Shown here in pieces: positions 9,983 through 41,314 of a DNA stretch of 64,000 nucleotides. The notes under the pieces were generated by a model that worked only from the letters and a program-made list of their open reading frames with translations, was not told where the DNA came from and did not search any database. Numbering within the stretch: the stretch's first letter is position 1; every line of letters starts with the position of its first letter. The translations under genes were made by a program, and so were the position numbers. The DNA comes from Oopsacas minuta (taxonomy: Eukaryota; Animalia; Porifera), in NCBI GenBank assembly GCA_024704765.1, contig JAKMXF010000321.1, forward strand, positions 558,001 to 622,000. Direction: 5' to 3'.

Positions 9983-10218
9983 TTAGAAATACACAGTTTG
10001 TGAATGTAATTGTAGAGACTTGTTCTACAACTTATACCTACACTGGTCACTGTATTAAGTTACCAATAAATAGCTAATCAATAGCATACCCATAAAGATG
10101 CTATTACGACGAATCGGCTGATAACCTCGATTGAATAATGAATTTAACCACACTATACAAAATTCTCACTGTATTCTCAATTCATACTGCACAACATGCT
10201 CTAATAAATATATACATT

Positions 10219-11519: not shown

Positions 11520-11742
11520 ACAAAACTCTGTTATGAATCTGCTTATCTATCTTTAAATATATGTGTCGAGATATTTTCAAATCTTTTAAGTTAAGCCTAT
11601 GAAATATTAAATTACCTCTGTTCTAGATATTTGCATTGATCAACATTACCCACCATTCAATCTTGTATACAATATTAGATCTTCATAGCGAATTTACCAT
11701 AAAAGTAGGTTTTTTGATATTTTCACAGTCCCCGATACCTTT
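11520..11742. promoter_or_regulatory. Probable bidirectional promoter between the amnionless-like gene and DDX56
   Basis: Head-to-head start codons only about 220 nt apart; inferred from geometry only. Confidence 0.5.
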
Positions 11743-13770: not shown

Positions 13771-13931
13771 AGTTTAATATATATTTGTAGCTCTGTCAAT
13801 TAGAAATGTATCTTATCATATATCTTTCCTGTAATATAATCAACGAATCGCGCATTACCCCAATATTTCTAGCTTTGTATTCAATTAATCAATCATTTTC
13901 AACAGTAATTGTTCGCACTTCCAATCTACTA

Positions 13932-14081
13932 CAGTCAACTCCCCCTTATATCAAAATCTGAGATTACAAATATGGTCCCATATCATCGAAGTACCATATA
14001 TTTCATTGGCTATATCGATCTCCGCTTATATCGGAGTAATTTTCGCTGTCCATCGAGCTTCGACATAACGGAACCTGACTG
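13932..14081. mobile_element. Tigger/pogo-like MITE family (CAGTCAACTCCCGTTATATCGAA ends)
   Basis: TA-flanked left end, imperfect TIR, shared core TACAAATATGGTCC. Confidence 0.75.
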
Positions 14082-14208
14082 ACAAAGAATATTACAGTAA
14101 TACATTTTAATGAGATCAAATAAAACGACAATACAGTTAATATACGTATTTATCACGAGCAACTAACGATAAGATAATCCTTATTAACTAATTCGAAATG
14201 ACTAATGC

Positions 14209-17200: not shown

Positions 17201-20200
17201 ATAATCACAACACCAAACACTCTTAAAATCAGTAATTCAGTTAAGTTATAAAATTGCTTGAATCTACTGGTAAGTGTTTTCACTGTGTTGTAGAGAATAA
17301 CTGAATTTATTACTTCTTCATAGTCTGAGTAAGCAAAGTAGAGTAATAGACTATCTGGTAGGAAATGAGAGATGGACCGTTCGTACCAGTTTGCCACTTC
17401 TTCTGCCATCTGATTGCTGTGAATTGGTTCCTACAGGTTCAATATTATCTCAATTACCGTGATTAGTAATTTTACATTACATAACAATGCAATATATTCA
17501 AATCACTATGCAACTCCAATTTACGCCAAACCATGAGATATACTTGCTAGCATATTTTGGCCGTTTTGTTAGCTAAATTTCTAAAATTAATCAAGTGACG
17601 CCACCTTACACATGCACACAAACATACCGAATTTTAGATTTGTAGCTCTTTCAATCAACCAATACGAAAATGTAATATTAATTTGTAAAATTACTACAGT
17701 TACACTGCTGTATACATCCAATTAATACAACGAATAATAATAATAATAAAATCTAATTTATCCAATAAATCTATTTATACCCCTCTCTCAGCCATGAACT
17801 TGCTTCTGGACTCTAAGTACTGAGCAGCTTCATACCATATATGGGTATGATAAGGGAACACCAGTAGACACTGTTCATACGCGAACATTACTACAAATAA
17901 TTTCAATAATAACCAGCACTTTTATTTTATATTTGTGTATATTTAGTAAAAATTGGCCGAACTCTCACCTCGTTTCGTTAACGTTACCATATCGTCTGTT
18001 TGCAGTACGTTAGATTTCTCCCAGTTTATATAGGATTTCCACAAATCAATCTATGAATGGAAAACTAAAATTTTTGAGTTTATTGCAAACTATATTAACC
18101 TGTTGCAATTCCTTGGGATTGCCTGTTGGTGGGGTTGGAGGACCATTCTTATTGAGAGATCTGTAATCTGTCTCGAATGCCTTGGCAGTTCTTCTAGCAG
18201 CCATTTGGACTCGTGTCTTATCTTCAATGAATTTCTTTGCCAAACTTTGATTGCAACCCTTCAAACATTAAATAATTAGGATTGCATACCATTATCATAA
18301 TGTATTCGATGTGAATATCCGATTTTAATTGAAGCTAATCGTGATTGATTTCAAAATTTATAAGCAAGTTGGGTGGGTATTTCCCTAAGGGATCATTCAA
18401 AGTTACGTAACATAAATTTTCCTAATTTTGGTCCCCTCTCCTCCCTGTGTCATACATTTGACCGTTCTGTAATACAAAATAATGGGGCTGTCACACTTTG
18501 CATATCACCCCTTTCTTGTCCTTGGTAGCGTTACGTAACTTTTGAACGGCCCTAATATGAAATAAAATTTGAATTTGCCAACTCAAAACAATTATATATT
18601 ACCTCTACCTCTGTCTAAACCAATACTATATGAAACACTCTACATACCGTTTCGAAATCACTGTAAGATTTCCATATATTCTCAACCCCCTGTAACGCAG
18701 TAGCAATAGCTCTCTAAACAATAAATCACAATAATTATACGGTAGTTTCCAATAGATACTGATAATTAGCATTTTATTAGCATATTGGATACCTGATAGG
18801 TTTTCCTTAACTGGTTAGTCTTTTGGGTTTCAGCAAAAGTCCCTGTGCAATCACTATAAATATACAGTGCCAGCTTAAAGTATGCATGATACAATTTCTA
18901 TTTCTATTAGTTTCAGTCAATTGTTGAAAAATAGTAAGTTATCACATTTATTTCTGTATTTATACAAATTGGAAGCCAATTCCCTTCTGGGTTATAATTG
19001 CAATCTCACCTTGTTTTCAAAAAGTGGATGAAATCTTTCCAGATCTGTGTGAAGCGAAAAAGGAGATAGATAAATTATTTTATCTCTACGTAACTTTAGC
19101 ATTAATTAATATTTCTAACAATACTTACTGAGCCTCAATTCTTGTTTATACGTTTGCGAATATGTACCCCAGTGGCGTAGCCACATCCGGGTAACTGACT
19201 GTCGTGCCCGGGCAATATTTCTAAAAATATGTTTGTAACTGCTTTAAGCAAATTATTTCTACTTAATAATAAACCGTTTTGTTGTGTTTCGATACTCTCA
19301 ATAATTTCCATATTCATTATCTCAATTCAATTCGTATTATGTTTTTACTGTTTAAACCCACTCGTATTCTTCATTTTATTATTCTTATTATGGCATACAT
19401 TGTATGTGTGGTCTAAATCCAATCTTGTCCGTGTGCCCGGGCAAAATCACTCAAGGCTGGCTACGCCACTGATGTACCCTTATGTTCTTATTAGGCTAAC
19501 TAATTTCTCAAAAAAATGTTCAAACTAGACTAATTGATTGTAACTTGCAATAATCTCCCAAAATTTCAGACTAATCCCTACAAGTTACAGTGGAACCTGG
19601 TTAATACGCATATACGAACACGGTTAATACGAATTTCCATATAAAACGAACAAATATTTATATAAAATCAGGTACATACGATATTTATTAAATTGGTATT
19701 ATTCCGGTTAATATGAAGTCAGGATAAAGAGAACAAATTTTGGTCGTCATTTGTGTTCGTATTAACGAGGTTCCCATGTATATAACCCCTCTATAAATGA
19801 TTAATTTCGAAATAGTCGATGCATATGTCACCTGACCAAATGTATAATGTATTGACAAACTTACAGAAGTAGAGTTCATGTCCAAACCAACATTGTCTAA
19901 AGCGAATTCATAAGCTTTTGTAAGCTTCTCCCTGTTCAGAATAAAATACAATAATAAACATGGACACAATATTCGTTATATGAAGTGCAGCTACGAATCC
20001 AGTTACTATCAAATGAATGAATACATTTATTTGTATATTGGCCAATTTCCTATTTATGGTTTTACCTGTAATTGGAGAGCTCCCTCTTAACATCACGTAC
20101 ATAATTCACATAGCATTTCCATAAGTCAATATGTAACACTCTTTTCAAACATCTTTGAAACAACTACGGGTAGTAGATGGGTTAACCCATAGCTTAATTA

Positions 20201-22827
20201 TCAACATTACGTAATTGTATGGTTACCTTTTCGACCTTATCGTAGTTTCTATGTCCCATCTATTGAATCAAATAGAATAGTATAATAATGATGTAATAAT
20301 GTATAGTGCCATTTCTATAATGTTAGATACTAATTCATGACTGTTGTTATGCATTATAATGTATGTATAAGATATTTGATGACCGATTTACTATTTGAGA
20401 GAGAATATTAATTTAGAGTGCTGAGATGAACCAGCTGTGGGGTTTATTCAGAGCATTAAGCGTTCCTCATTTTTGGAGCGCACTCCCGCTCCCGCTCCTG
20501 AAAATGGAGCGCGCTCCTTTTCATTCTTCTTGAATTGGACCATTGTACATTCGGAAAATTGCTAAAATGTACACGTCAAACCCATCTCAATAAATAAGTA
20601 TTAATGTGAATTATGAAAAAGTGACCCAAACCATATTTATAGCAACAAGAGTGAATTTTATGCAGAATAACGATGAAATGTAAATAGTTTGCTATTAAAT
20701 AGGAGCATGCTCCGGTGTATCCGGTCCTCAAAAATGGGTCATTGCTCCACCCTTCATTCTTTTTTCTTAAATTGAGCGCATTCTAGGTTCCTCTCCTCAA
20801 AATAGGAGCGCGCTTCTTTAATGCTCTGGGTATATTCTTGATGGCCTTGTCAAAAGCTACTGTGAGGTCGAACTCTGCAATATTGCTTCTATTTTAAATG
20901 CAGAACACGATATATACCAGTAGTGGAGGAGTATGCGGAGCCATGACCCACCACCTTTTCGTGCAGATGAGTATTAGGAACTCCCTTAAGTGATTGGATT
21001 CTGTTATAACGCGTGTATTGTAGCTTTCTATCTCGCCAATATATTGCAAAAGTAATGTATTCGAGGGTTTTCTGTTATCATATCATAACCAGATATAGTT
21101 TGCGCCTAACACTCAAAATTTGATTCCTACGCCCCCTGCCCCTGTATACATGATGATACCACGATATGATATTTATAAGATTTTGGGAGCTATTCCCGTT
21201 CTCAATTGATTTGCAACTAAAAAAAATTACTTCCTGCATTTTGAAATGGCAGAAGTGAATTAAACGGATAAAACTATACATTTAGGGAAATCAAGCGGAT
21301 GGTAGCCCACTTTCTAGGAGCTATAGGAATGTACTCAAAGGAACCGTTTGAAATATGTTTCTTTGAGATTAACTAATAAAATACTTCACCAAAATTGAAC
21401 ATCAGATGAAAAGTGTTAAGAACATTGCCTTTCCAGCGGTACCGCGTACTTCTATACACTTCAGTGTTTTCCAATATTGTTGGCAATGTACATTTATCAT
21501 TTTTCCTGACCCAGAATTGCAATCAGTGCAAAATAGTACTTCTCCCGAATCCCACGATTGGGAAATTTCACGTTTGAGAGCCTTGCACTATAGCAGGTTA
21601 TACTATCTGTAATAACCCGAATAATGTTCCTTGTATTAAATCCCTATTTCAAATTTACAACCATAAGTTCCCCCAAATAATCCATCCTTCCCAACATGTT
21701 CAGTAATATAAAACATATCACAACACATACAAAGAGAATATACAATAGAATTGTAATCAGATGCATGACCAGGGTTACCATTATTAGAATTGAATTAATA
21801 CATTAATGTAACTCCACCTCATGTTCTATGTAAGTCTTCCAGAATCTTCCACATGTAGGGAACTGTATTACAAGCTTCTCAAACAATATTCGAGCTCTTG
21901 AGCTGTGCTGGCCCTAGAAATAACAAGTTTGGATAATTGTAATCTATAAGTTATTTTATACGTATAATTATTCCTCCAACTTTTCCGTAGGAAACGGTCC
22001 GGTTGGTCAGGTTTCAACCTGACTAATTGAAATCTGCTTGCTACGGCCTTGTCCAATTACGTAGGTTAAATTCGACATAGCTAGCTACCATATGTCACAG
22101 TGTTATAAGGGTTTTTAATAAATTTAACGGAATTCCTTTCATTCCTAGAAATTGTCCCGCGGACATTAATCTCTAGATGTTATAAGAATAGTATTATTAG
22201 AGTATAGTGGACCACTAGCTATTCACTGACATACTGGGTTTCCGTTACAATCCTACGTCAAAATTAGAATCATTATCAGAGACATAGTTGGGAGTAAAGC
22301 TAAATATAGCGAGGAACATATTACCTGTTTACCTTCCCAATCCCACTCAAACTAGGAATTAAGATTATTACAGTGAAACCTCCACACACGGGGTTCCAGA
22401 GACGCCGAAAAATACTACCATTACCACGTTTCACCGTTTCCATAGATCGTTTGTGGAGGTTTCACTGTATTAATTAAGATCCCACTATATACCTGTGCTT
22501 CTCTTATCAATATACCCCAGGCATCAATATCATATGGGTTAGATTTCAGTTTGCCTTCAGCACGCTGTCCTTCTGCTGTAGTAGACCAGGGCTGAGATAG
22601 GTCAGTTACCTAGGAGGAGACATGATACAACTATTTTTGTAAGTACAAAATTATCAGGAATAAACACTAACATCTTTTCCTAATTTCTTTGTGAAGAAAT
22701 CACTTCCTTGATGCATTGGTTGAGTTTGTGTTACAACCTGAGGTTGTAACGGTACTACTAGTGGTGGGGGAGCTTGCTCCACTTGCATTGGCTGTTGTTG
22801 TTGTTCAGGGGTCGAAATTGTCGCCAT
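14209..22827 (-). CDS. CSTF3: Cleavage stimulation factor 77 kDa subunit (Suppressor of forked), roughly 20 exons
   Basis: Minus-strand exons read in order: [16 protein letters not shown] (about 22493-22609), [22 protein letters not shown] (about 21820-21917), NYDKVEK (about 20227-20259), [51 protein letters not shown] and [12 protein letters not shown]-stop (14209). The start ([12 protein letters not shown], 22827) is less certain. Confidence 0.93.
16089..16231. mobile_element. Tigger/pogo-like MITE, in a CSTF3 intron
   Basis: TA|CAGTCAAATCCCGTTA ... TAACGGGAGTTGACTG|TA. Confidence 0.85.
18389..18552. mobile_element. Second Harbinger-like MITE, in a CSTF3 intron
   Basis: TAA|GGGATCATTCAAAGTTACGTAAC ... 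GTTACGTAACTTTTGAACGGCCC|TAA. Confidence 0.8.
19170..19471. mobile_element. hAT-type MITE with perfect 8-bp TSD
   Basis: ATGTACCC|CAGTGGCGTAGCCA ... TGGCTACGCCACTG|ATGTACCC. Confidence 0.92.
20449..20828. mobile_element. hAT-type MITE with subterminal GGAGCG repeats
   Basis: GGTTTATT|CAGAGCATTAA ... TTAATGCTCTG|GGTATATT (8-bp TSD, one mismatch). Confidence 0.88.
22371..22467. mobile_element. Tc1/pogo-type MITE, same family as 5444
   Basis: TA|CAGTGAAACCTCCACA ... TGTGGAGGTTTCACTG|TA. Confidence 0.85.
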
Positions 22828-23029
22828 ATGATCTACGTTCTCACACTCTTAAATTTTCTAATACAAATGTAAATAGTAGAAAGTTATCAAGCAAAGTTAT
22901 GGAACATATTTTCTCTTTTCGCATATTCTTCCAATTTCAAAACGGTTAGAGTTGTTTGAGGGAGGAAAGTTGAGGTTTCACCTTGTAGAAAATACGAAGA
23001 ATGAGAATTAGCTTAGAGAAAGTAGAGAG

Positions 23030-23063: not shown

Positions 23064-24884
23064 CTACAAACGAGAATAATTCATAATACAATTACCTTGC
23101 TATTTGTAGTCATATAACTCGTGTATAGGCTCAGTGCGAGCCTGACTAAGGATTCTACAATCTACTCTTATAGTATTATAGTAGGTTGTTTATGAAGTTG
23201 AATCCTAATTTGTATTTATTTATTTATTATTTTGCTTTCTTTGAGAATACAGTCTAGTCTGTCGAACACGGAAATATCGAAGAATGAAATCGTATAAATA
23301 ATAATATGGTCACAAACAGGTGTCAAAGGGAATCCTGTTTCTCCGAGTGTTTCCCCTTGGTGAATATTGTGAAACAGGATTCCCTACGGAATACTTGTTC
23401 CCGTTTCCTTGACCCGCGTACGTGTTGCTAAGTGTTTCTAACTCACTATTTTGGTGATTGAATTGAATTTTGATTGGATTACCTAACTAGATAGCATTTA
23501 GCCGAGGATATGAGCATTTCTAACTCATTATTTGGATAGCCTATGTGTATTTTCATTAGATTATCTTTGGATCTTGGTCCTGCGAGGTGGCTGGAAGTTC
23601 TTTAACCCGCGTACGTGTTGCTAAGTGTACAAGGGGAAACTACTCCGAGAACCAGAGTTTCCTGCGGAATGATGTTTCCCTAAACATCATTCATTAGTGG
23701 ATAATGTCTAATTGTTTATTATGATGTAATTAGCGGTTCTATCGACCTTCGATATATCGGGAGTTTACTGTAACATTCATTGTTGAGGTGTGTTACTATA
23801 GAATATCGAATAGAATACGAAATTACGATGCTTTGACTAGTTACGGGACGACATTATGAGTTTTACGTAGAACTATAGGGAATGATGACACTGAATGTTC
23901 CACATAACGGATAGGACAATACAATTTCCAAGAATGTTGACTTATTTATTTTGCCAAATTCTTTTATAAGAGCAATGCCTTCTAGAATGCCCTTTCCCTC
24001 TTTTCTTAGCATTATTTTCCTGATTTTGGCATGTGGAAAATACATTGATGGGTGTTAGGACGTGTTCTACCCTGTTTCCATCCATCCTTACCCTGAAAGT
24101 TTCCTGGTGTGGGGTACTATACCGTCTATTCGGGTTCTTTTGAGAAGGCATTTCCCCTGAGACCTAATACTCTCCAGCATGCATTGTCATGTATGCCCCC
24201 TTAGAGCCTAAACTCAATATCTCTTAAATATATGCAAGATTTCAATCAGTATTATTACACGGCAATATTATCTCAAATCTTATAATGTGGTGATCGCCTA
24301 TTGGCAATTCCATACTCGCCAACCTTCCAGGATGCCTGGATTATCCCGGGATTTGACGTGATATCCAGGGAACTTTTGAAAATCTCGGGATCAAGATAAT
24401 ATCCAGAGAAATTGTTAGAAAGGATACGCAAGTATGCAATTCCACTATAAGTATTTCTCATACACAGAACCCAGAAAATTCCCATTGGAATTTCCAATCA
24501 TAGTGGCTTTGCTTTGCTCACTCCATTTCTAGTCTAATCTGGAATTAAATATTCCTTATCCAAATTAGGCTATTGAGCTTGCAATAAATCTGATTTGCTT
24601 TGAGTACTAAGAACAAGTTCAAATATTAAATCATACTTTTATCCTTGTAAGGAAGTAAGTACATTTACTATCTAACTTTTTAATAGAATCATTTCTCAGC
24701 AATATGATGTAACTTTTGCTTCGTATATAATCTTTGGACATATAAATTCAATGTTTGTGCAACTAATTCTTACAGATAATATTACCACAAATAAGCATTA
24801 GATAATAAGTATCGAGTAGGCGATTGAACTATAAACTCATTTGTTTTACATTTATCAAATACAAAGTATATTGTAGAGATTAAA

Positions 24885-25766
24885 ATGGCAAAAGCTTACG
24901 ATTTTCTATTCAAACTTCTTCTTATTGGGGACAGCGGTGTAGGGAAAACCTGTGTACTTTTTCGGTTCTCAGAAGATGCATTCAACTCCACATTCATATC
25001 AACTATTGGGATTGACTTCAAGATACGGACGATAGACTTAGATGGGAAAAAAATAAAATTACAAATTTGGGATACAGGTAATCATTATACTTAATTACTA
25101 TTCTACGTACGTCTTTATAAATACAGTTAACTCCAGTTATATCGAACACGGATCTATAGAAATACCCGCTTATATCGAAGCCTTAAATTGTACAAATATG
25201 GTCCTAAACCGTCAAAGTAACTTGAATTTCATCGATTCTATGGCTTATTTCGAAATAATTATCGCGGTCCCATGAGCTTCGAATTATAATCGGAGTTGAC
25301 TGTAGCCTGTTTATTTATTACAATCTCTCTAGCCGGTCAAGAGAGATTCAGAACTATTACAACAGCTTACTACCGTGGGGCAATGGGTATCATGCTAGTG
25401 TATGACATTACGAATGAAAAGACATTCGACAATATAAAGCATTGGATAAGAAATATAGATGAGCACGCAGCTCATGACGTAGAGAGAATGATAATCGGAA
25501 ACAAATCAGATCTAGATGATCGTCGAAAAGTCCCCAAACAGAGAGGAGAGATGCTAGCTGTTGAGTACGGTATCAAGTTTATGGAGACTAGCGCAAAATC
25601 TTCCACCAATGTTGAAGAGGCGTTTTTCGAACTCGCAAGGGACATCAAAAATAAAATGGACAAATCAAGCATCCGTATGAATAGCAACTCTGTTAAACCA
25701 GACAGACTAACCAGGCTAGACGCACCGGAGAAGAAGGAGAGAAAATATTTCTGTCGTTTTTTCTAA
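24885..25766 (+). CDS. RAB8: Rab8 small GTPase, 208 aa; join(24885..25077,25333..25766)
   Basis: [66 protein letters not shown]. Ends in the CaaX-type CRFF, as Rab8 does. Confidence 0.93.
25124..25302. mobile_element. Tigger/pogo-like MITE, in the RAB8 intron
   Basis: TA|CAGTTAACTCC ... GGAGTTGACTG|TA; interior matches the copy at 26046. Confidence 0.85.
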
Positions 25767-26045
25767 AATAATTTTCTCATAGAATCTATTGAAACTATGT
25801 TGAAACTGACTGACTTAATTAGTGATTTGTTTATGATGTAATTTTCAAATACTCTTCTTTGCGTGACTTTTCTGTCCCAGAATTCTAACTTGAAGATCTG
25901 ATAATTGTTCTCTCTGTTTATTACATTATATATATATAATTATAGTCAAGTGTATTTGTTAGTAAGTTAGCGCTCTAGATGTGAAATGCCATTATTCGGG
26001 TCTTTTAACTGTCTACATTCAAGTAATTTGAGTTATGCAGGCATA

Positions 26046-26222
26046 CAGTCACCTCCCGTTATATTTCAATGGATATATCGAATACCTGCTTATATTGAAG
26101 GCTGAAATTATACAACTATGGTCCTAAACCGTCCAAGTAACGTGAAATTCAACGGTTCTTTCGCTTATTTCGAAATAATTATCGCGGTCCCTTAAGCTTA
26201 AATGTTTAACGGGAGTTCACTG
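26046..26222. mobile_element. Tigger/pogo-like MITE
   Basis: TA|CAGTCACCTCCCGTTA ... TAACGGGAGTTCACTG|TA. Confidence 0.85.
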
Positions 26223-26350
26223 TAGTTATTTCTGGCTTCGAATATGTAGCCAATATCGCGAGCAGAGTGGCAGTTACAATCCCGGGAAATCCTTGTGGGT
26301 ATTACTCTTTGTAGATAGCTTGTCCGCTCATCGGAGTGTTCGTATTCTTG

Positions 26351-26445
26351 TGCACTTTATTTGAGAGATTACGAACAGGAGAAACTTCTGGGGAGCAGAG
26401 TTGAATGACTCTGGGTCTGAGTATGATGGATATTAGCTAAGTTTA
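26351..26445 (+). pseudogene. Degraded copy of part of KRI1 exon 1
   Basis: gcactttatttgagagattacgaac...gggagcagagttgaatgactctgggtctgagtatga closely matches KRI1 27540-27620 with substitutions and a small deletion. Confidence 0.8.
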
Positions 26446-27203
26446 CCTAATATTACCTTCTAATTTGACTCATCTGCAGAATTATGAAAGTATATATATT
26501 TCATTAGATAGCTCTTCTTATGTAATATTATTATCACACATAGAGTGGATTATGAAATTACTGAGTATAAGTTGAGTAATAATCAGGGGCGGATCTAGAA
26601 AATCCGTGGGAGGTATGCCGCCTATACAACCGTCAAAATATTCAATTATTGGATTTTGCTCTTTTACTTGATCATTATCAGTTTATTCCGTTTTTTAACA
26701 AATTGTAATTATATTATAACAACCAGTATTTCTCAATATGTAGTGTTTTAACCAAACATCAACAAATATTTCATAGTGATGTATGTATTTTATGCGATTT
26801 TTATGTCAGGCTTAATCTCCATGACCAATTTAACCAATCTTGACAAGCAACACGAATGCCTGTTAATTCGAACATTCGCTATCTCGAACATACCGGATGT
26901 TAACTGTATATTACCGAAATCCTCCCATATGATAAGCAACTTTGAATAAAATTACCTTTCAGTATTTATGATTCGAATAACTTTGAAATTAATTTGGACT
27001 ATTGTATGTACAGTACAGTAGGTTTCTGTAAACACCACCCTGATTATTACCAGTGGCGGATCTATGGGGGTATGGGGGTATGCATACCCCCCACCTGCTT
27101 TGTTAAATTATTTATTTCGTCTACTCAGTAGAGGTACGCTGGCATGCACAAGGTATAAATGTTTATTTTCAATCTAGCATTAACTTTATTACGTCACGAT
27201 TCT

Positions 27204-31222
<4,019 letters not shown>

Positions 31223-31429
31223 TTTATTTAATGTTATCAGCTTTTATATGTATTTCTCTTAAAATAATATTTCATAGAAACTGTGCCATTTAGCATGGGT
31301 TTAGTTATACACATTTAAATCATGGAAGAGTCAAATATAATTCCGGAATTATTTAACACTAATTATTAAGTTTGATTGAAAATTTTTATCAGAAAATATC
31401 GTTTTCGGCCTACAAATTGCTGTACAAGT

Positions 31430-32450
31430 TTACTTCAATATTCTACCAACACAGAATACTTATTACAGTGTAGTAATAAGATTATTGAACAATATGTTGT
31501 TTTGTCTCATTACTTGACTTGTTGTATTCACATCTTTGACTACCGATAGTGACATATCAAAATATCACGATGGGGAGGGAGGCACGCACCCCCAACCATC
31601 TAAATATGTCATATTATTAGCTCATTTGTCCTGTGTATTCAACTGTACTTCGTTTATGAAGGGTAATCAGTCTGTTGAATCATAACTGTATTTTTTAACT
31701 TGCGATTTGACTTTGAAAATTTACGTAGAATTAGTTATTGTTTTGTTTCTGATATGATTACACAATTTCTAACAAGCAGGTTGACAATCTGTAAAATGAA
31801 CTTTAGCTTGGCTGTTTCTTAATTTTCTGCTTTATCGGTGTATCTTGTGTTTCATTTTTGCAATGAAATACAAGTTTGTATGTCTATCATATTGTATAAT
31901 ATACTGAGTACTTAATTATATTTGTTTATGTTATCCGTAATTCGAAGGTCAATTGAATAATTAATTATTATACTGATGTATGAGAGGTGGCAATATGACA
32001 TTATGCGTATATTGCTTGGGTAATAAGTCAATCCTGATTTTGCATATTAATATTTATAAATATGTTTTTTTGCTTGAATATGTTATCATCTAATGCATCT
32101 GATTTGTTTACCATTTGATTGAGTCTTTTTGAATTATCAATACTTCCATACAATTATATTAATTGTTCCATAGCTTTATGTGTAATTAGCACCCAGGTTA
32201 CTGGCGAAAACAGGACATAATACTAATTTTTAATACATGCTATCAAGATGTAATTATTGCATTAGTAAAGAGGGGTATTTCTATATAGAATTACCTCACT
32301 CCCTACTGCTACATACCGCGTCTTATTCTCTATTGTAGTTGTGAGCTCTATTGCTCATTTCTCTGTATAGATGATATATTTCATACAAAGCCATGGCCAG
32401 ACACATTTGCTAGGCATTCAGTTATAATTAAACAATTATAGTTTCGCGCT
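31430..32450 (+). pseudogene. Possible decayed multi-TM (7TM-like) gene
   Basis: One frame reads SIILYNILST*LYLFMLSVIRRSIE*LIIILMYERWQYDIMRILLG** with flanking hydrophobic stretches, loosely resembling RILYNIQIIYEFILFLRAS...VLYKRFFD of the gene at 48045-49241. Many stops. Confidence 0.33.
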
Positions 32451-33077
32451 TCGCTATAAACATTATCTTATGAGTAATTTATGTGTAAAGTAATTATGTC
32501 TAGCCGCTGATTTCTAAGTTTCCTGATTAACATTTATGTATTTTGTCTGTCTATGTGTTGGGTTTGAATAATGGAAATCGACTGGCATTATTATAAATTT
32601 ATTACATACCTATATGACGTATACGAAATGAAGGACATCAACATGATCACAAGGTATTTGTGGAGTGCGGTATATATTACCTACATTGATGTTTATTGTT
32701 AATTACATCTTGCGATTAATCGAACCGACACCCTCGAGTTTACCCCATTTTGTTATGCAAATTTTGGAATTTCTGAATATCCGAAAAGTTTATAAATGTC
32801 GAAAAATAGTGAGAATTGCGTAAGGTTTAGTGTTCCAATCCATTACACTCCTTACGCAAGCTAGAGAATACATCATCTAGATAGAGATTATGTATTCTCT
32901 AAAATATTAATTTAGAAACGTTTCTCAGATCGAAGGTAATACATCAACTCACTCTGCTTTCTGATTGGTGGATTAACCCATAGTGACGCATTATGCTCTT
33001 ACATTCAACTCTTATAAATACAAATTTTGTTGTTAAATATTAATTATTAGCTTTTAATTACCAACCAGAATACAGAT

Positions 33078-34024
33078 ATGTCCAGAGCACCTAATGCATT
33101 ACCTATACACAAGATAGTAGTTATAGGAAGTGGGGGAGTTGGGAAATCAGCATTAACTCTACGCTATATGTATGACGAGGTGAGTTTAGTTATGATATGA
33201 TCTATTGACTCTATAATTATCATAATACATGTACAGCGGAAGCTCGTTAATACGTACGCTAACAATAGTCAAAATTTGTTCGCTATACCTGGAGTTGGTA
33301 TTAACTAGAGTCCATTATATTATCCTTCCTCAAATTGTTATCAATCTAAATATGTTAATATCTTAATACAGATCTCTATAACCACCTGTCCTAGTGAGTG
33401 TGATAATTTGACAAATTGTTAGTGATAAATAATTGTGTATTGGAAATAATTATCGTGCATACGTATTTGCGATAAGTTCAATTTTGACCGCTAACCTCAC
33501 AGTTTCACGATGAATATGTCCCAACAAAAATCGGTCAGTTCAGTAAAGAGGCCCAACTCTCTTCAGAAGAAGCTTGTATGATAGAAATAATAGATACAGC
33601 AGGAGAGGAGGAACTTAAAATTAGAAAACAGCAGAACTACGCAATCAGTGAGGGAATTATATTCGTATACGCTATTAATGATATAGACTCATACCATAGA
33701 GTTAAAGAGTTATATGAGGATGTTATGGTAGCTAAAACTGAGATAGGACAGAGAGAAAATTTTGACATTCTTCTGGTCGGGAATAAATCAGATATGGGGA
33801 CAAATAGACAAGTTCTGAGGGTTGAGGGAGAGCATCTGGCCTCTAAATGGGGGTGTGAATATATTGAAACTTCTGCGAAATTGGATGAGTTTGTCTCGAA
33901 CTCATTTCAATTAATTTTATCCAAAGTACATGATAGAAAGTTTAAAGTACCCGAACAGAAAGCGAAGAAGAAGAAGAAGAAGAACAGAAACAAGAAGTTC
34001 AAACTAAATTGCTTTATTGTATAA
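33078..34024 (+). CDS. Ral-like GTPase isoform A (divergent, polybasic tail), 207 aa; join(33078..33179,33503..34024)
   Basis: Exon 1 [34 protein letters not shown]|GTGAGT joins in phase 0 to CTCACAG|[12 protein letters not shown]...DTAGEEE...NKSD...ETSAK...[19 protein letters not shown]. Confidence 0.85.
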
Positions 34025-34700
34025 ACTCAAATTATTATAATTAAACAGCTCTTTTGTAATTATAATTACTGAAATATATTGAGTAAGATATACACTGTGT
34101 AATGTATTTTTAATGTAATTGGCTTATCCATGGTTTGTCTACAGTTTATGGACAACTATGAGCCGACTAAAGCAGATAACTATAGAAAGACTGTAAAGGC
34201 AGAAGATGGAACCGAATGTCAGTTAGATATTCTAGATACAGCAGGTAGAGTGTAGCCTAAGTTACTTGTTTATAGTGAAGTAATGTATTTATCACGAGTG
34301 ATTTGTAGGTCAAGAAGACTACCCTGTAGTGAGAGAGGCTTACTACAAGGATGGAGAAGGATTCATGCTTATGTTCGCTATAAATGATATGGATTCTTTC
34401 ACAGCTTTGGATGATTTTCATGAACAGATAACTTCAGTTAAGGGATTAAGCAAACCGCTACCCTTTCTGCTAGTAGGAAACAAAGTAGACCTAGATGATT
34501 CAAGAGCTGTATCTTCCATTGATGCCCAGGCTTGTGCCTCAAAATGGAACTGCCCATTTATCGAGACATCCGCTAAAACTCGTATAAACGTAGACGAGGC
34601 ATTCATAAGCCTATTCAACCAAATCCATTCAGCCAAGCAACCAACTGAGTTCGAAGCGCCAGCCCCAGAGCCTAAAAGAAAATGTTGTACTATTCTGTAG
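33078..34700 (+). CDS. RAL: Ral GTPase isoform B (canonical), 197 aa; join(33078..33179,34145..34244,34309..34700)
   Basis: The same exon 1 joins in phase 0 to CTACAG|[15 protein letters not shown]...DILDTAGQEDY...NKVD...ETSAK...[14 protein letters not shown] is the Ral effector loop. No other P-loop exon lies between 34024 and 34145. Confidence 0.88.
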
Positions 34701-35213
34701 ATGAATACTCCACAAATCTACATAACATCTATTTTACTGTATTAGTGCAATAGTATGGACGTGTGTTTATGTATTTAGTCTGTCAATGTATTTCTAATTA
34801 CTCTCTAATTTACTATTCATTACTGACCGTTCGGTGTAATATATTATTTGTAAATGGATAATGCTTTATTGGGAAATATGATATTTCGTTTCATGGCATT
34901 CCTACTAATCCATGGTAAATCTTCATGAGCAAGGAATGCTCTCGATATATCAGGTTAGAAAAATATAGAAAATTCCAAGATTTATCGAAAATATCACCAA
35001 TATGGAGATATTTTCAGATAGATTTTTTTCGATATTTTTCGGGTTTCTAAGTCTGGTTATTCTAATTTATCTGTAACTATTTACTACCGGCCATCGCAAT
35101 AGCCGCGACGAATTATATTATTAAAGAATACTGATTGCTGTGGTAAAACCTTTTGCAGCAACCTATGCCCAATTCTAAAGATTTGAAATCATAATTATTT
35201 ATTATTACTAGCA

Positions 35214-36157
35214 ATGAACAAGAAGATCAATATTTTCCTATTACTAATCTCATTCATGGTTAATTGTGTACTCTCCAAGAGCTATACATTCACAGTTAAA
35301 ATATCAGCTAGAGACAGTTTGTGTTTATACCAGCCTATGACAGAAGGCAATTATATGGAAGTGGATTTTCAAGTGATAGAGGGAGGTGCGTTAGATATTG
35401 ATTGCCACATTAAAAGTTCTAATTTGAGAAGTTTTAAGAGTTTCAATAGACTATCTGAAGGTTACCATACATTTGTAGCTGATAAAACAGGCGATTATGC
35501 TGTATGTCTGGATAATACACATTCCACACTGGTTGCTAAGTTGGTTTATCTTATTCTGGAGACGAATGCAGAAGATGAATTAGAGGTTCGATTTCTGTTA
35601 ATTATGGGCAAATTATGTTGTATTTTGTTTTCTTTCATACTTGACAACTCTCCGAGATTAAATGTGATTGTCTTATAGAAGTGAAATTTTTTCAAAATCA
35701 TGGGATTTTTCACACATTTTTGCTATATTTCTGGATATTTTGGTGGAACAGGGGAATAACGTGAATCCCGGGAAATTTGTAAAAGGGGGGTTGGTAATTA
35801 TGCACTTTGAATATAAAATTACAGAATTATGGCGTTAATCTTTACGAATTGTTGATGAATTATGTTTTTTAGGATTTAAATCTCTCAGAAGAAACAATCT
35901 CAAACTACGAATTAGACGGACAAGTTGAAAACATAGAGACAAAACTAAGGAACATCGGTCATGCCCTGAACTTGATAATTACACAACAGAGACATTTTAG
36001 AGGGAGAGAAGCTAGACATAGAAAAACCGCAGAATCAAATTATACACGTGTAAACTATTTCTCGATAGCTCAGATAATAGTTTTAATAATAATAGCAGGG
36101 GTACAGGTAGGAATGGTTAGAGTATTCTTCAGAGAAAGGAAAGGACAAAGAATTTGA
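35214..36157 (+). CDS. p24/TMED family cargo receptor (gamma-like), 218 aa; join(35214..35585,35873..36157)
   Basis: Signal peptide, GOLD domain (LCLY...VDFQVIEGGALDID...GDYAVCLDN), coiled coil ending REARHRKTAESNYTRVNYFS, TM helix and short FF-containing tail. Confidence 0.92.
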
Positions 36158-36977
36158 ATTAGCTATTCTACATATTCGCTGTATTATACTAATTCTATTG
36201 ATGTATTAGCTATAAATTGTATCCTAGCTAATAGAATTATAATATAACGGTTTGTTGAAACTATTTTCCTCGTGCCATGTAAAATACATTACTTGTTTCT
36301 CATTTGGAATTTCTTCGAGAATTGGGGCGGCGGCGGGTGGTTTTTATTTTTTATAAGCCAGCTAAAATGGAAAATATTTTGAACCTTTGATTATCTGATC
36401 ACTTTCTCTCTGGGTATCAAAGTATTGAATTTTCAAATATAAAAGTAGTCTAATGTGGATTACACAATCTGAACAAAGAATTATCCATAAATTTGGAAAA
36501 AAAGAAATAAAATCATTCCGGACGAGGGACAAAATTAGGGATGGGTGAGGATGAGAAACAAGTCTATTACTTTATATGGCCTTAATATGGACGAGACTGT
36601 GTACTTTGATGTAGAATTTGATCATAAAAGTAGAACTGTGAAAGAAAAGGAACAATATCGATTCGACATTTTCTGATAAAATTCGAAAAATAAACTCCGA
36701 AATAACTTGAGGGACATTGAGGCAACAAGTAGGGGCTAGAATATTCTATGTGATCAAATTTCTACTTTTCTGATCAATTTCTATATCATTTCTGAGGAAA
36801 ATATCCGGTCGCATATGGACGTTTTTCACTATTGTTTATCGAATCTACTCATTCCATCATTCACAGCAACAATGGTTAAATATTTTTAGTTGAGTTTTTT
36901 GGCCAACAATCTTTACAAGGAGAGTTTCAGCTCTGCAGATTCAAAATCACCGATGCCTAAATCATATTTACATGTAA

Positions 36978-37234
36978 GGCCACTGTTAGTTGGAAACATG
37001 TTTCAGATCCACCGCCCGCATCTGATTTGGCTACCGCACTAATATTGTCATTATTTCACCATATACTCAATGTTTTTCAACTACAAGGTGTATAAACTGG
37101 CTAGAGCACAATAGAAGTATCTTTTTCATAATCTAGCCTATTCTCATATCAAACACAAAATGATGAGATAATGATAATGAACCGCCCGTCCGCATGCATG
37201 ATCAGGTGGATCTAATGCGGAGCTAACAGTCCCC
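36978..37234. mobile_element. Tourist-like MITE T1
   Basis: TAA|GGCCACTGTTAG ... AACAGTCCCC|TAA; interior closely matches the copy at 54290. Confidence 0.85.
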
Positions 37235-37564
37235 TAATATAAATACATTTGATAATTTCTCCTACACTTTCTATTGCAAAAATTCTTGCATTACTTTCTA
37301 ATAATATATATAACAATTCTCAATTTTATGTCTATATTTAGCAACTATAAGTTAATATTACTCTCTACCGCCTGGCGTATCTGTTAGAACAATAGATTTG
37401 AAGCCAAAAGAAGCACTATTTTAATAGCTTCTTCCTCTCAACTGTAATCAACCTTATCTTACAATAGGCTAATATTTAGAGTTATTCAATCTTTATATAA
37501 ATTCTCAAACTGTATTTCTATCTTACAATTTTGCCTTCGGCTAATTCAACACACCCACACCCAC

Positions 37565-37633
37565 ACACATAGGGTTAGGGTTAGGGTTAGGGGGTGTGTG
37601 TTCTACCCTAATTCTAACCCCAACCCTATGTGT
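37565..37633. repeat. Interstitial (TTAGGG)3-4 paired with a degenerate inverted arm
   Basis: ACACATAGGGTTAGGGTTAGGGTTAGGG ... CCCTAATTCTAACCCCCAACCCTATGTGT. Confidence 0.85.
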
Positions 37634-38627
37634 ATTTACTAACTTTAGGTTTATCAGTAAATTAAATGATTACCAGTCAACTCGTATCATGCATCAACTC
37701 GTCCCTGTTCAACTCAACATCAAGTGGGCATAAAATATGGACGAGTTGACTGATCCCCAAGTTAAATACATTTCTACCAGGGGCGTTGTCAGGGTAGCGC
37801 CACCAAATATTTACTACCTTTCAGGTTCATTATTGGACATTCGATGTACCAAAAATTACATTAATAGAAACATCGATAGTACAAAGGTGTGACCTCAGGA
37901 GAACCATAGCACCACCTCGCTTCTAGTGCTAGCTACAACCCTGATTTCTTCCAAATTTGTAAACTTCTTCACAACATTGAAAATATCCTATTTTTCTAAA
38001 TATAGAAAATCATGTATAAATGCGTATACATTATTTCAATGAAAGTTATACGAGAGTGATTTACTCAGTATCATGATGATTGTATCCATCCATTTGGTAA
38101 ATTTCTGATTAGTAAAACTGTTTTGATTTCTCTAGCAGATTTGTAAACAAATTTCTAACTAGTATGATATGACAATTGTCAGTCAACTCAACATCGAGGG
38201 GACGTATCTACAAGTACGAGCTGACCAAAATTATAGACGAGTTGGCTGCCGCCGATATAACAATTAATATTATTCCCCATCAATCAACGTAGGTTAATCT
38301 ATAGTTCCCACAAAATCATCACTTCGGGCTACTAAGTTCTTAATTATAATATCCATGGAAGATATGACGTAATACATAAATTTCTTGCAATCATCCAATC
38401 TTAACGTTTCTATAGGTACCCAACGGGATGTTTATTCTTATCATGATTAAGAATATCTTCAATACATAATTACCTTGTGATGTCTACCCCCTCTTATAAT
38501 TAACGTATTTAGTGGCTAAAGTTGTTTTTCATCAATAATTAATCAATGATATAGCATGATGTGTGTTTTGTATGCTGTCAATACAATACATATCGTATGT
38601 CTATAAATAATAAACAAATTTGCAATA

Positions 38628-39152
38628 ATGTTAAAAAATCTAAATTACAATATGTCTTCAAGTAACTATGCAAACTTTACTTTCGAGAGGGAAGAGATTC
38701 TCCAGGTTAAATACATATTCAATACATTTACAGGATCCAATACTACTTACATTTGCATCGAAGATGTACCAATTATTTTCAAGAAGCTTGGACTACACAG
38801 ATCGAAGTTCCAGATTTCTAAACTGCTTGATCCTTTTAAGGAATTGCAAGGGTTAGATTTTCCAAATTTCCTTCTACTCTTATCTGCGGATATTTCTGAG
38901 CAAGAAAACCCTAGGAAATATGTACAATTGATGTCACAATTCAGTGAGGAAGCTTCACTGACATTCAACCAGATGGACAAGGACCATAATGGAAAACTAA
39001 GTCCAGAGGAGTTGAAAGAGGGAATGGAAGAAATATTTGGAGAAGATGCACGGAAAATTGATATTGATGCTATGTTTACTGCTGCAGATTCTAATCACGA
39101 TGGACAAATAGATTTTACCGAATTCAAGTCTGCTCTGAAGTCGGTTTACTAA
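38628..39152 (+). CDS. Calmodulin-like EF-hand protein
   Basis: Two canonical C-terminal EF loops (DKDHNGKLSPEE, DSNHDGQIDFTE) and a degenerate N-terminal pair. Single exon; start may be the Met at 38652. Confidence 0.85.
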   Translation: MLKNLNYNMSSSNYANFTFEREEILQVKYIFNTFTGSNTTYICIEDVPIIFKKLGLHRSKFQISKLLDPFKELQGLDFPNFLLLLSADISEQENPRKYVQLMSQFSEEASLTFNQMDKDHNGKLSPEELKEGMEEIFGEDARKIDIDAMFTAADSNHDGQIDFTEFKSALKSVY

Positions 39153-39325
39153 TAATATGTCTAATTGTTGTTTGTTATTTGTGTATGCATTATGTGTATT
39201 TTATGAAATAATATTCAAAATAATAAACTATCAAATATACGTTAATATACGTAGTAATTATTCCTAATTATAGGAAAAAGTTACTTAATCATTATTAATT
39301 AAAAAATACATTGAGAGTATAGAAA

Positions 39326-40921
39326 ATGGCTACGAGAATATCTCCAGAAGAAAGTGATAGAGAAGAATTCCTGTTTGGACTAGAGACAGCTCGCAGTGCT
39401 CTGAGAGAGAGAGTATCAGAACTGAGAGCTAATATCCACAAGATTGAAAAAGAACTGAGTGAAGAACTGAACAAACTGGAGAAGGAATTCACAGACAAAC
39501 AGAGCGAATACAAAAATAAAATGTCCTCTCTCACTGCAATAAGAATTAACATAGAGGATCAGTTCAAGAGTGGAGAGTTTGAGGATCTCAAGAAATCTAT
39601 CTTATCTGATACAGACAAGAAAATAGAAGCTCTAGACAGAGAGTATCCTCCTCACAGTGTGGAACTTGTATGGAAGGAAGGAGTAGCTGGTCAGTTGAAG
39701 GAGATAGGTAATGTAGTAGTGAGTGAAGGTAGAAGAGAAGTAAAGCATAAAAAAATTAAATTAGATAATTATATAACAGAGAGTAGTCGAGTAAATGTGG
39801 AAAGGCCAGTGAAACGAACAATTGATAAAATGGCAGTAAAACAACCAGTTGCTATTCCTCCAGTTGCTATTCCTCCAGTTATTATTCCTCCAGTTATTAT
39901 TCCTCCAGTTATTCATGCTAGAATAACAGATTACGAATTAAGGCGTAAACCTATAATTACAGTATCTCTATTAGGATGTCAATATCCACAAGGAATAGCT
40001 TATGATTATATAGCCCATGCAGTGTATGTATTGGATAACATATCTTGTAACTTATACTCATATTCCCTTGTTACTGAGAAAGTGAAAGAGGTTCAATTCG
40101 CATCTTTCATGCTAGTTAACAGGAAGGAATTTTTCATACAAGGAGATTACTATAGTAGCATCATAGGCGATGGATGCAAAACTTATATAACACGAGAAAC
40201 CCCTTTAATATCAGCAAATAGCCCTTTCAACCGTAAACCTGAACCAGAATACGTATATTTCTCACCTCAACCATACGGCATTGAGTTTCAAAACAACATA
40301 TTATATATCAGTGCTAAATCTCGCAATATTGTCACTCATGATTTAATAGCTTCCATTTCTTTAAGAGATGAGTCTCAGGATAAGTACATATCTAGTAGTC
40401 GTGTTTTTGGTAAGCATGGTTCACTAGAGGGTGAGATGAACACACCCACTGGGTTAGCATACTCAGATCCTAATCTGTACGTGTGTGACTCTAAGAACGA
40501 TCGTATTAATGTATACTCTAATGGTTGCATAGTCAAAACTATAACACATCCATCCTTGTATCAACCTCTTGACATTAAGATACACAAGAATAGTTTATTC
40601 GTATTGAATAGCAAATACTACTTAATTCTGCAATTTGATTTAAGAGGAGACCTACTTAGTCAATTCTTATCTAGAGAGTCAAATGATTTGATGCCTTCTT
40701 TCTTCTGCATAGACTCCTCAGGTCGCCTTTTGATAACCGACAGTAGAAAACCTTATGTGTACGTATTTATGAAATATAATAGAGGATATACTTTACAAAC
40801 AAGTCTAGAGTTGAAACATGGAGAAGACAGACTAGTTGAGCCTAGAGGGGTGTGTATAGACAAAGAAGGGAGAGTTATAGTTGTATGTAACTATAAGGAA
40901 GCTATGTTACAGATCTTCTAA
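39326..40921 (+). CDS. Coiled-coil plus NHL-repeat beta-propeller protein, 531 aa
   Basis: N-terminal heptad coiled coil; NHL signatures YPQGIAYD, PTGLAYS...YVCDSKNDRI, PLDIKIH, PRGVCID. No RING or B-box seen. Confidence 0.9.
   Translation: MATRISPEESDREEFLFGLETARSALRERVSELRANIHKIEKELSEELNKLEKEFTDKQSEYKNKMSSLTAIRINIEDQFKSGEFEDLKKSILSDTDKKIEALDREYPPHSVELVWKEGVAGQLKEIGNVVVSEGRREVKHKKIKLDNYITESSRVNVERPVKRTIDKMAVKQPVAIPPVAIPPVIIPPVIIPPVIHARITDYELRRKPIITVSLLGCQYPQGIAYDYIAHAVYVLDNISCNLYSYSLVTEKVKEVQFASFMLVNRKEFFIQGDYYSSIIGDGCKTYITRETPLISANSPFNRKPEPEYVYFSPQPYGIEFQNNILYISAKSRNIVTHDLIASISLRDESQDKYISSSRVFGKHGSLEGEMNTPTGLAYSDPNLYVCDSKNDRINVYSNGCIVKTITHPSLYQPLDIKIHKNSLFVLNSKYYLILQFDLRGDLLSQFLSRESNDLMPSFFCIDSSGRLLITDSRKPYVYVFMKYNRGYTLQTSLELKHGEDRLVEPRGVCIDKEGRVIVVCNYKEAMLQIF
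39845..39916 (+). repeat. Coding 15-nt tandem repeat (ccagttRYtattcct x about 4.8)
   Basis: Encodes PVAIP-PVAIP-PVIIP-PVIIP-PVIH in the linker of the NHL protein. Confidence 0.95.
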
Positions 40922-41314
40922 TAAGTATAGTATTAACTACGAATTTATTTTCAGATCACTTCTAACATTTGCATCTGTATCACTTATCCAATGACAATAT
41001 TATGTTATTCAGAAACCATCGTACATTATACAGTAATTACATTATTTTTCGTGGACATTTTAAATACATATAGTTTTACAATTTTTAAAGTACAAATGAT
41101 TTTGGAAACATAATTATCCAAATTTGTTGCATATAGTCAAAGGAGGCGTGTATTTTTCACAAGAATTTCTAGAGGGTGATGATAAATTTTTATGAACCTT
41201 GGAGCCTTTCCCCACCCCCGCCTCTTATTCACAGGGAAATACTGTAATAAATATACGAATAATGTAGTTAATACACTGCTGCATAACTCGCTATAGAATA
41301 CTTAATCATTCTGA

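Follow-up and report, generated by a model that had tools for sequence, protein, structure and literature searches.

Evidence that a single Ral-type P-loop exon is spliced to either of two small-GTPase bodies in the glass sponge Oopsacas minuta

In a 64-kb stretch of the genome of Oopsacas minuta (GenBank assembly GCA_024704765.1, contig JAKMXF010000321.1, positions 558,001 to 622,000; the whole stretch is called the window here and is numbered from its first letter), one Ral-type P-loop exon is followed in tandem by two bodies of a small GTPase, designated A and B, each of which supplies the remainder of the protein and its own stop codon. We consider it highly probable, at roughly 85%, that this locus is one transcription unit that makes two small GTPases through the choice of an alternative 3' splice site and terminal exon, the exon 1+B product being the major form and a canonical Ral and the exon 1+A product a derivative specific to glass sponges. 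This reading is carried by the anatomy of the locus, by splice junctions in RNA contigs from the same organism, by conservation of the layout in six other genomes, and by the purifying selection indicated for both bodies.

Anatomy of the locus

The features were read directly from the window and translated, and all of them lie on the + strand. Exon 1 (33078..33179) is 102 nt long, starts with the ATG at 33078, and encodes 34 amino acids that make up beta-1, the P-loop, and most of alpha-1; its G1 motif is GSGGVGKS (Walker-A match at 33126), and a GTGAGT donor follows in phase 0 directly after 33179. The intron removed in isoform A (33180..33502; joint 33179>33503, GT..AG) measures 323 nt and ends in the acceptor sequence ...CTCACAG, with a CGCTAAC branch-point-like element just 5' of the CAG. 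Body A (33503..34024) is a single, intronless terminal coding exon of 173 codons plus a stop that opens in phase 0 at a Phe homologous to the first Phe of body B. It contains the switch I sequence PTKIG, followed by DTAGEEE, G4 (NKSD), G5 (ETSAK), a polybasic (polylysine) tail, and the terminal residues CFIV. The spacer between the bodies (34025..34144) is only 120 nt long and holds the 3' untranslated region (UTR) of A and its presumed cleavage region, with ATTAAA at 34040-34045, and then the acceptor of body B (TGTCTACAG, ending ...TCTACAG). Body B consists of two exons. The first of these, exon 2 (34145..34244), also starts in phase 0 at Phe and encodes switch I (YEPTKAD), beta-2, beta-3, and DTA-G, in which the Gly codon is split by a 64-nt GT..AG intron (34245..34308; phase 1, inside the Gly of DTAG|Q) that has no counterpart in A. 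The second, exon 3 (34309..34700), completes the catalytic DTAGQ and provides the GQEDY of switch II, NKVD, ETSAK, the tail KRKCCTIL with its CCTIL end, and the stop codon.

The choice of body would exchange 173 of 207 amino acids (84%) in isoform A and 163 of 197 (83%) in isoform B. The two bodies are approximately 34% identical and could be aligned end to end from the same Phe (expect value, 5e-28). A six-frame scan for the Walker-A pattern across 33180-34144 revealed no second P-loop. Over the full 64 kb, the pattern occurred four times, and only the match at 33126 was of the Ral type, one of the other three belonging to a Rab-like gene at 24927; tblastn likewise revealed no Ral-type P-loop exon in the window other than exon 1.

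Much of this anatomy had been described in an earlier, sequence-only reading of the window, and its structural statements were reproduced here. Direct reading returned the same coordinates for the one 102-nt G1 exon with its phase-0 GTGAGT donor, and translation yielded two tandem units, both of which open in phase 0 at the homologous Phe and have their own motifs, CaaX box, and stop. The scan and tblastn upheld the statement that no second P-loop exon lies in the 120 nt between the bodies. The residues assigned to body B (EPTKAD, DTAGQ, and CCTIL) and to body A (PTKIG, DTAGE, the polylysine tail, and CFIV, together with the lack of B's intron at DTA^G) were likewise recovered, and the exchanged share of the protein, put at about 83%, matched the computed values.

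Splice junctions and transcript ends

Five public sequencing runs contain the region, which was compared over 32400-35400. Two of them (X1 and X3) were DNA-like, with a flat depth of about 100, and one 3,024-nt contig from a DNA run spanned 32400-35362 with zero differences from the window. Only run X4, which shares its sample with the genome runs, was RNA-like; its data are in the form of assembler contigs (31-mer graph). The X4 depth was 35 upstream of the locus (a contig ending at 33058), rose beyond 14,000 in the bin 33006-33106, and ranged from 14,000 to 65,000 over exon 1 as a whole. It was approximately 278 in the intron, approximately 850 to 4,000 in body A, approximately 430 in the spacer, and 24,000 to 41,000 in body B. 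The X4 contigs contained the joint 33179>33503 (depth 1796; two contigs) as well as the joint 33179>34145 (depth 7958), both with GT..AG ends, and also the joint 34244>34309, which removes body B's own GT..AG intron. In the RNA contigs of this one run, a single donor was joined to two acceptors in the same organism. The sequence-only reading had proposed precisely these two exon 1 junctions as a check, and their presence, along with the layout found in six other genomes, bears out its claim that alternative terminal exons are chosen from one P-loop exon.

A contig that entered body B unspliced had a depth of only 156, compared to 7958 for the joint between exon 1 and B; therefore, essentially all B messages carry exon 1. 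Isoform B was the major form, exceeding A several-fold to about 15-fold, a rough figure since contig depth is a poor measure of expression. Because the alternative bodies are homologous and adjacent, the locus resembles those in which tandem-duplicated internal exons are used in a mutually exclusive manner, but it does not belong to that class: there is no common downstream exon, and both bodies are terminal. Body A closes with a stop codon, and the X4 contigs contained no joint that leaves it.

Since adaptor-flanked X4 contig ends lie at 33065 and 33075, we infer that transcription starts about 10 to 20 nt 5' of the ATG. The start region with a very short 5' UTR (33059..33077) was delimited by the rise in X4 depth and by these contig ends, and the X4 contigs from 32400-35400 contained no exon upstream of exon 1. 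At the other end of isoform A, the X4 contigs break at 34048, just past the ATTAAA, and the depth drops from 849 to 156 on the contig that runs on, which suggests that the 3' end of A lies at this point. For isoform B, the depth remained at 8,000 to 23,000 until about 34823 and then collapsed, and an adaptor-flanked contig end was present at 34858; the 3' UTR of B was assigned to 34701..34858 on the basis of the X4 depth and this contig end, the end point being approximate.

Conservation of the layout in related genomes

Oopsacas was compared with six further assemblies (L001 to L006) that came from different assemblers, the contigs being 0.5 to 0.84 Mb long in five of the six. These are presumably also from glass sponges (hexactinellids), because they have a common gene order and an exon 1 whose protein sequence is 94 to 100% identical. 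In all six, the order was Kri1, then exon 1, body A, and exons 2 and 3 of body B, followed by EMP24 and an EF-hand gene (and an NHL gene). Exon 1 was present in a single copy at the locus in every one of the six; the body A orthologues were intact and 54 to 72% identical, and exon 2 of body B was 79 to 91% identical. This answered the call of the sequence-only reading for a search of related genomes for the same layout.

The architecture was also the same in detail. All seven genomes had a GT donor after exon 1 and phase-0 AG acceptors before the Phe of A and the Phe of B; body A was intronless and body B had its intron at DTAG|Q, and each body finished with a CaaX end and a stop. The A frame, 167 to 174 codons in length, was open in 7/7 genomes and ended, after a polybasic run, in CFIV, CFVA, CCIV, CCVV, or CSVI, while the B ends were CCTIL, CCSIL, or CCSII. 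Close to the A acceptor, the sequence TTGAYCGCTAMYC-CACAG was kept in L001, L005, and L006, and the B acceptor region was kept in the six assemblies. No P-loop exon was found between A and B at any of the six related loci. A tandem array of conventional Ral paralogs was found at a separate locus (L007, 6971-16043), in the same assembly as L003 on a different contig and beside a CLN3 gene. Every paralog of the array comes with a separate P-loop exon and is interrupted at the two intron positions of exon 1/B, and since these P-loop exons were found, a second exon 1 at the A/B locus would have been detected.

Within the L007 array, two copies of exon 1 read GSEGVGKS, with Glu at the equivalent of Ras Gly12, and one body has Tyr at the position of the catalytic Gln (DTAG|YEDY); these would be natural substitutions of the "oncogenic" type.

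Two noncoding elements of the locus were shared with some of the related assemblies. The motif TTAGCTTT(T/C)AA at window positions 33047-33057, about 20 to 30 nt 5' of the ATG, was kept in L005 and L006 and had one mismatch in L001; lying just upstream of the inferred start, it may be a core promoter element. A perfect TGACGTCA palindrome, which resembles a cyclic AMP response element, was present in intron 1 of L001, L005, and L006 (alignment columns ~155 to 165) and absent from the Oopsacas intron. In L005, positions 3204-8767 form an exact tandem repeat of 2,782 bp (3204-5985 = 5986-8767) that covers A, B, and the start of EMP24. This repeat begins inside intron 1, its second copy is devoid of exon 1, and it is either an assembly artefact of a metagenome scaffold or a very recent duplication.

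Selection on the two bodies

Ratios of nonsynonymous to synonymous substitution rates (dN/dS) were calculated by the Nei-Gojobori method (NG86). Most species pairs were saturated at synonymous sites, and the unsaturated pairs had dS values of 0.44 to 0.69. Overall, dN/dS was 0.07 to 0.2 for body A and 0.016 to 0.047 for body B; in the unsaturated pairs, the values were 0.115 to 0.129 for A and 0.030 to 0.047 for B. The pair L002-L004 gave 0.065 for A and 0.016 for B, and the comparison of Oopsacas with L005 or L006 gave approximately 0.2 for A. The deficit of nonsynonymous changes in A was significant by Fisher's test (P = 1e-11 to 7e-30), and nonsynonymous sites evolved 2.4 to 4.2 times faster in A than in B. 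Altogether, 66 positions of body A were invariant, among them DTAGEE, the switch I Thr, and ETSAK. These values indicate that both bodies are under purifying selection.

Predicted properties of the two products

Exon 1+B encodes the complete set of G1 to G5 motifs: GSGGVGKS, the Thr of YEPTKAD, DTAGQ, NKVD, and ETSAK. Its top ten matches in the PDB were all RalA or RalB, at 150 to 161 bits versus 134 bits for KRas, and its switch I is that of RalA but for one residue. On this evidence from sequence, exon 1+B is a canonical Ral orthologue. It ends in KRKCCTIL, in which basic residues are followed by a CaaX box ending in Leu (the geranylgeranyl type), and prenylation of this end is predicted.

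The best PDB match of exon 1+A was also RalA (143 bits), and body A keeps the Ral-type PTK in switch I. It has Ile-Gly or Ile-Ser (PTKIG or PTKIS) in place of residues A48-D49 of RalA and Glu in place of Q72 in 7/7 genomes, and its switch II is rewritten. Body A would be derived from Ral and is not, as judged from its effector loop and its missing catalytic Gln, a canonical Ral. An AlphaFold2 model of exon 1+A had a mean predicted local distance difference test score (pLDDT) of 89 and a predicted template modeling score (pTM) of 0.83, and it contained the full order of elements from beta-1 to alpha-5. When this model was compared to KRAS and RalA, target-normalized template modeling (TM) scores of 0.92 to 0.94 were obtained, at 1.5 to 1.8 Å. 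The predicted fold of exon 1+A is a complete G domain. Moreover, the product probably binds guanine nucleotide, because G1, the switch I Thr, DxxG, NKxD, and SAK are kept.

Mutants of the Ral effector loop provide a basis for arguing that A does not bind Sec5, Exo84, or RalBP1. Since A differs from Ral at the equivalents of A48, D49, and Q72 and over most of switch II, it probably does not use these canonical Ral effectors or the GTPase-activating proteins (GAPs) of Ral. With respect to the catalytic residue, the Q61E substitution in Ras has been reported to increase the intrinsic GTPase activity (PMC2987813, PMC10515638); therefore, "GAP-independent" is a safer prediction for A than "GTP-locked," and by analogy A could as plausibly be fast and GAP-independent as locked in the GTP-bound state. 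The tails differ as well, with a polybasic run and a CaaX box ending in V, A, or I in body A and CC-x-I-L in body B, and it is plausible that the two products differ in lipid modification or membrane preference. The GAP-resistant or effector-switched variant with different membrane targeting that the sequence-only reading proposed is likewise a prediction.

Origin of body A

In a profile search of 1.84 billion cluster representatives, one A-type cluster was recovered at 271 bits, and the next single-domain matches, many of them of the Ral type, scored 113 bits or less. Multi-domain matches that ranked above the rest were set aside as fused or duplicated gene predictions. Neither a word-based search nor the exhaustive profile search found an A-type body in any other cluster. 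Because there is this single A-type cluster among the 1.84 billion representatives, body A appears to be specific to this group of sponges. An assignment of A to a subfamily by score was attempted and dropped, since with an A-only profile all RalA and RalB chains scored 101 to 103 bits versus 95 to 100 bits for HRas, margins that are too small; NCBIfam placed A only in the generic small_GTP domain.

In the trees, the A clade had a support of 100/100 and a very long stem. The A and B sequences gave the same topology, (L003,((L002,L004),(Oopsacas,(L001,L005,L006)))); therefore, both bodies predate the divergence of the seven genomes. Body B fell inside the starred Ral clade (97*) of a quick 89-row tree. 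When A was constrained to group with all Ral sequences, the tree was 18 log units above the quick free tree (approximately unbiased [AU] test, P = 0.73), and when it was constrained to group with the glass-sponge Ral bodies, the tree was 43 log units above it (AU test, P = 0.92). A reduced tree, from which long unrelated rows had been removed, separated A plus the glass-sponge B bodies from other Ral and Ras/Rap rows with a support of 99/90. The reduced and constrained trees favor an origin of A in a glass-sponge Ral body. The position of A inside a Ral gene, the same intron phase at the same residue, the Ral-specific PTK, and the slightly higher profile scores of the Ral chains also point toward descent from a Ral body. 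If the gene segment 3' of intron 1 was duplicated in tandem, A and B would be the two copies; the upstream one, A, would then have lost the intron at DTAG|Q and undergone a burst of change in both switches and the tail before being kept as coding sequence.

Proposed mechanism and alternative explanations

In the mechanism that we propose, two acceptors would compete for the single exon 1 donor (33179|GT). Where the proximal acceptor at 33503 is used, A would be the last exon and the transcript would end in the 120-nt spacer. Where it is skipped, the polymerase would reach B about 640 nt further on, A would be removed within a 965-nt intron, and, with use of the distal acceptor at 34145, the two B exons would complete the message. 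Both products would have beta-1, the P-loop, and alpha-1 in common and would differ in switch I, switch II, G4, G5, and the lipid-anchored tail. We infer that cleavage and polyadenylation take place after A, that competition between the acceptors is the regulatory step, and that the products differ biochemically. A more far-reaching version, possible rather than probable in our estimation, is that in glass sponges one Ral gene has become a two-output switch, in which the shared P-loop exon puts a canonical Ral and a second GTPase with Glu at the catalytic position, new effector surfaces, and a KRas4B-like polybasic anchor under one promoter and their ratio is set solely by competition between the 3' splice sites, with A as a working GTPase that has different kinetics (GAP-independent and possibly intrinsically fast) and different partners. 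If true, this would be the first natural case in which splicing exchanges both switches and the base-recognition motifs of a small GTPase on the same P-loop.

Several observations weigh against one transcription unit with two GTPase products. The RNA support comes from a single RNA-like run in the form of assembler contigs, and the contigs that span the joints carry just 21 to 26 letters of exon 1; a 31-mer graph is expected to give flanks this short where it branches three ways, and the sequences end exactly at the predicted splice sites. Neither a poly(A) tail nor a mapped 3' end for isoform A was seen in the X4 contigs, and both proteins are predictions from sequence and RNA. In L006 (5839-6354), body A has SKLD where the other six genomes have the G4 motif NKSD, the frame being otherwise intact. 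The closest relative (organism B), represented by a low-coverage DNA run (X5) and 3 to 5% divergent, provided a further point. Ten listed differences in body A were in a neutral ratio of 8 nonsynonymous to 2 synonymous (P = 0.025 if dN/dS is 0.2; P = 0.003 if it is 0.12), compared to 0 nonsynonymous and 3 synonymous changes in the G domain of B, although these are small counts and one site may be absent from the list of differences. Several of the changes in A move between residues that are found in other species. Body A may be under recent relaxed or positive (adaptive) selection in the Oopsacas lineage. A dN/dS near 1 for A, which the sequence-only reading had named as evidence that would undo its proposal, was not observed between the assemblies and was touched in this closest comparison. 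Of the other outcomes that it had named in this sense, none was obtained: both junctions and depth over body A were present in X4, and no second Ral-type P-loop exon was found in the 64 kb. Last, in free searches with the full 89-row set, A fell outside Ral among other long branches, with a warning of possible long-branch attraction from the tool. We judged this placement among unrelated long branches to be such an artefact, as the constrained trees were likelier and the reduced set joined A to the glass-sponge B bodies. Of the phylogeny that the sequence-only reading had called for, the part concerning B placed it inside Ral, and a union of A with the glass-sponge B bodies was recovered in the reduced and constrained trees and not in the free search.

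Some of these same observations would also fit a rival history, in which A is a leftover partial duplicate in intron 1 that acts as a cryptic or decoy terminal exon, is mere noise or serves to turn down Ral (B), and yields no functional protein. That A is the minor form (by body depth and by joints of 1796 versus 7958), that neither the catalytic Gln nor the Ral effector residues remain in it, that the L006 copy is without the Asn of NKxD, and that the 8:2 ratio of changes relative to X5 contrasts with 0:3 for the B G domain would all be in keeping with a decoy. However, a decoy would require only an acceptor and a poly(A) site and no conserved protein, whereas the A frame has stayed open in all seven genomes despite synonymous saturation in most pairs, its dN/dS (0.07 to 0.2) reflects a nonsynonymous deficit with P values down to 7e-30, and DTAGEE, the switch I Thr, ETSAK, the polybasic stretch, and the CaaX box have been retained in a product that is predicted to be a complete G domain. 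We therefore regard the decoy explanation as unlikely.

The deposited annotation implies something different, namely, two independent neighboring genes. Body A is 100% identical to part of a 207-amino-acid GenBank protein of Oopsacas minuta (Hexactinellida; label P0001) that corresponds to exon 1+A and was deposited as a "Small GTP-binding protein domain" protein. Body B was deposited separately as a 168-amino-acid "Ras-related protein Ral-A-like isoform X2" (label P0121), a model covering window 34130-34700 that starts with MVCLQ at an intronic ATG (34130) and contains no P-loop. If B did begin at 34130, the joint between exon 1 and B would be a read-through chimera. Yet nucleotide binding would be impossible for a 168-residue product devoid of beta-1, the P-loop, and alpha-1. 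The codons read as MVCLQ coincide with the polypyrimidine and acceptor tract, which has been conserved for splicing and not for coding. The depth of 7958 at the joint stands against 156 for unspliced entry into B, and a P-loop exon between A and B was absent from every assembly. Two genes are very improbable on these grounds, and the deposited annotation splits the locus wrongly and misses the shared exon for B. Least credible of all would be an artefact of assembly, in which a collapsed or misjoined tandem duplication had lost its second P-loop exon. The exact repeat in L005 that starts inside intron 1 does demonstrate that such artefacts or young duplications occur at this locus, but the independent DNA contig over 32400-35362 showed no difference from the window, the same order recurred in six other assemblies from different assemblers (five with contigs of 0.5 to 0.84 Mb), and the RNA joints agree with the layout. 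Together, these considerations leave alternative terminal-exon choice within one transcription unit as the explanation that we prefer.

Relation to known systems and significance

The type of arrangement is known, being alternative last-exon use superimposed on a partial tandem duplication. KRAS4A/4B and the placental and brain isoforms of CDC42 arise from alternative last coding exons and swap only the C-terminal tail, approximately the last 10 to 25 residues. As at the Oopsacas locus, one promoter serves alternative terminal coding exons that confer different hypervariable tails and lipid-anchor signals, and KRAS4B, like Oopsacas body A, combines a polybasic stretch with a CaaX box. However, the G domain of the KRAS or CDC42 isoforms is identical or nearly so, whereas at the Oopsacas locus both switches, G4, and G5 all belong to the swapped part, which makes up about 83% of the protein, and the alternatives are only about 34% identical. 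GNAO1 (Go-alpha 1/2) and RAB6A/RAB6A' have tandemly duplicated alternative exons inside the G domain and resemble the Oopsacas locus in that homologous alternatives from a tandem duplication replace part of the GTP-binding domain. GNAO1 swaps about one-third of G-alpha-o and RAB6A swaps three residues, with the catalytic and effector loops essentially canonical; in Oopsacas, all but the P-loop exon is swapped and, unlike the alternatives of GNAO1 and RAB6A, alternative A lacks the catalytic Gln.

The architecture itself is closest to that of lola and mod(mdg4) of Drosophila, in which a common block of 5' exons is joined to many alternative 3' terminal exons. In both cases, constant N-terminal exons lead to 3' bodies that are complete in themselves, down to a separate stop and a separate 3' end, the latter being presumed for body A. 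In lola and mod(mdg4), the boundary falls between domains (BTB and zinc fingers), whereas the Oopsacas boundary cuts through one globular domain; therefore, one set of beta-1, P-loop, and alpha-1 has to accommodate both bodies. Relative to human RalA and RalB (PDB 2bov, 1uad, and 6zqt), exon 1+B shares YEPTKAD, DTAGQEDY, the N-terminal extension, and the CC-x-I-L end, whereas exon 1+A departs from them in Ile-Gly/Ser for A48-D49, Glu for Q72, a new switch II, and a polybasic tail whose last residue is V, A, or I in place of L. The novelty lies in the extent of the exchange and in a boundary that runs through one globular domain, with only the P-loop module common to both products. To our knowledge, no case has been described in which splicing exchanges the whole switch, effector, and base-recognition apparatus of a small GTPase, and paper searches returned none. 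The Oopsacas genome paper makes no mention of Ral, GTPases, or isoforms, and keyword searches of the literature found no prior description of such a locus.

The locus is a natural experiment in domain modularity, in which one beta-1/P-loop/alpha-1 module has remained compatible with two bodies that are about 34% identical across the divergence of seven genomes. It also illustrates a route by which a partial gene duplication can become a new protein without having its own promoter or first exon, and it poses a testable question as to the role of a natural Ral-like GTPase with Glu in place of Gln. In practical terms, the deposited models leave Ral with a protein that has no P-loop, and the Ral complement of glass sponges would be miscounted or misjudged in gene-content surveys of early-branching animals.

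Neighboring genes

A Rab8/10-like GTPase gene with at least two exons lies about 8 kb upstream of the Ral locus (window 24906-25706, + strand), and its P-loop, GDSGVGKT, is at 24927. The order Rab - Kri1 - Ral locus - EMP24 - EF-hand - NHL was kept in the related assemblies. In the close relative represented by run X5, 124 nt of window positions 34900-35025 are missing and 19 other letters stand in their place; this indel is in the intergenic stretch that separates the Ral locus from the EMP24-like gene, whose start is at about 35214.

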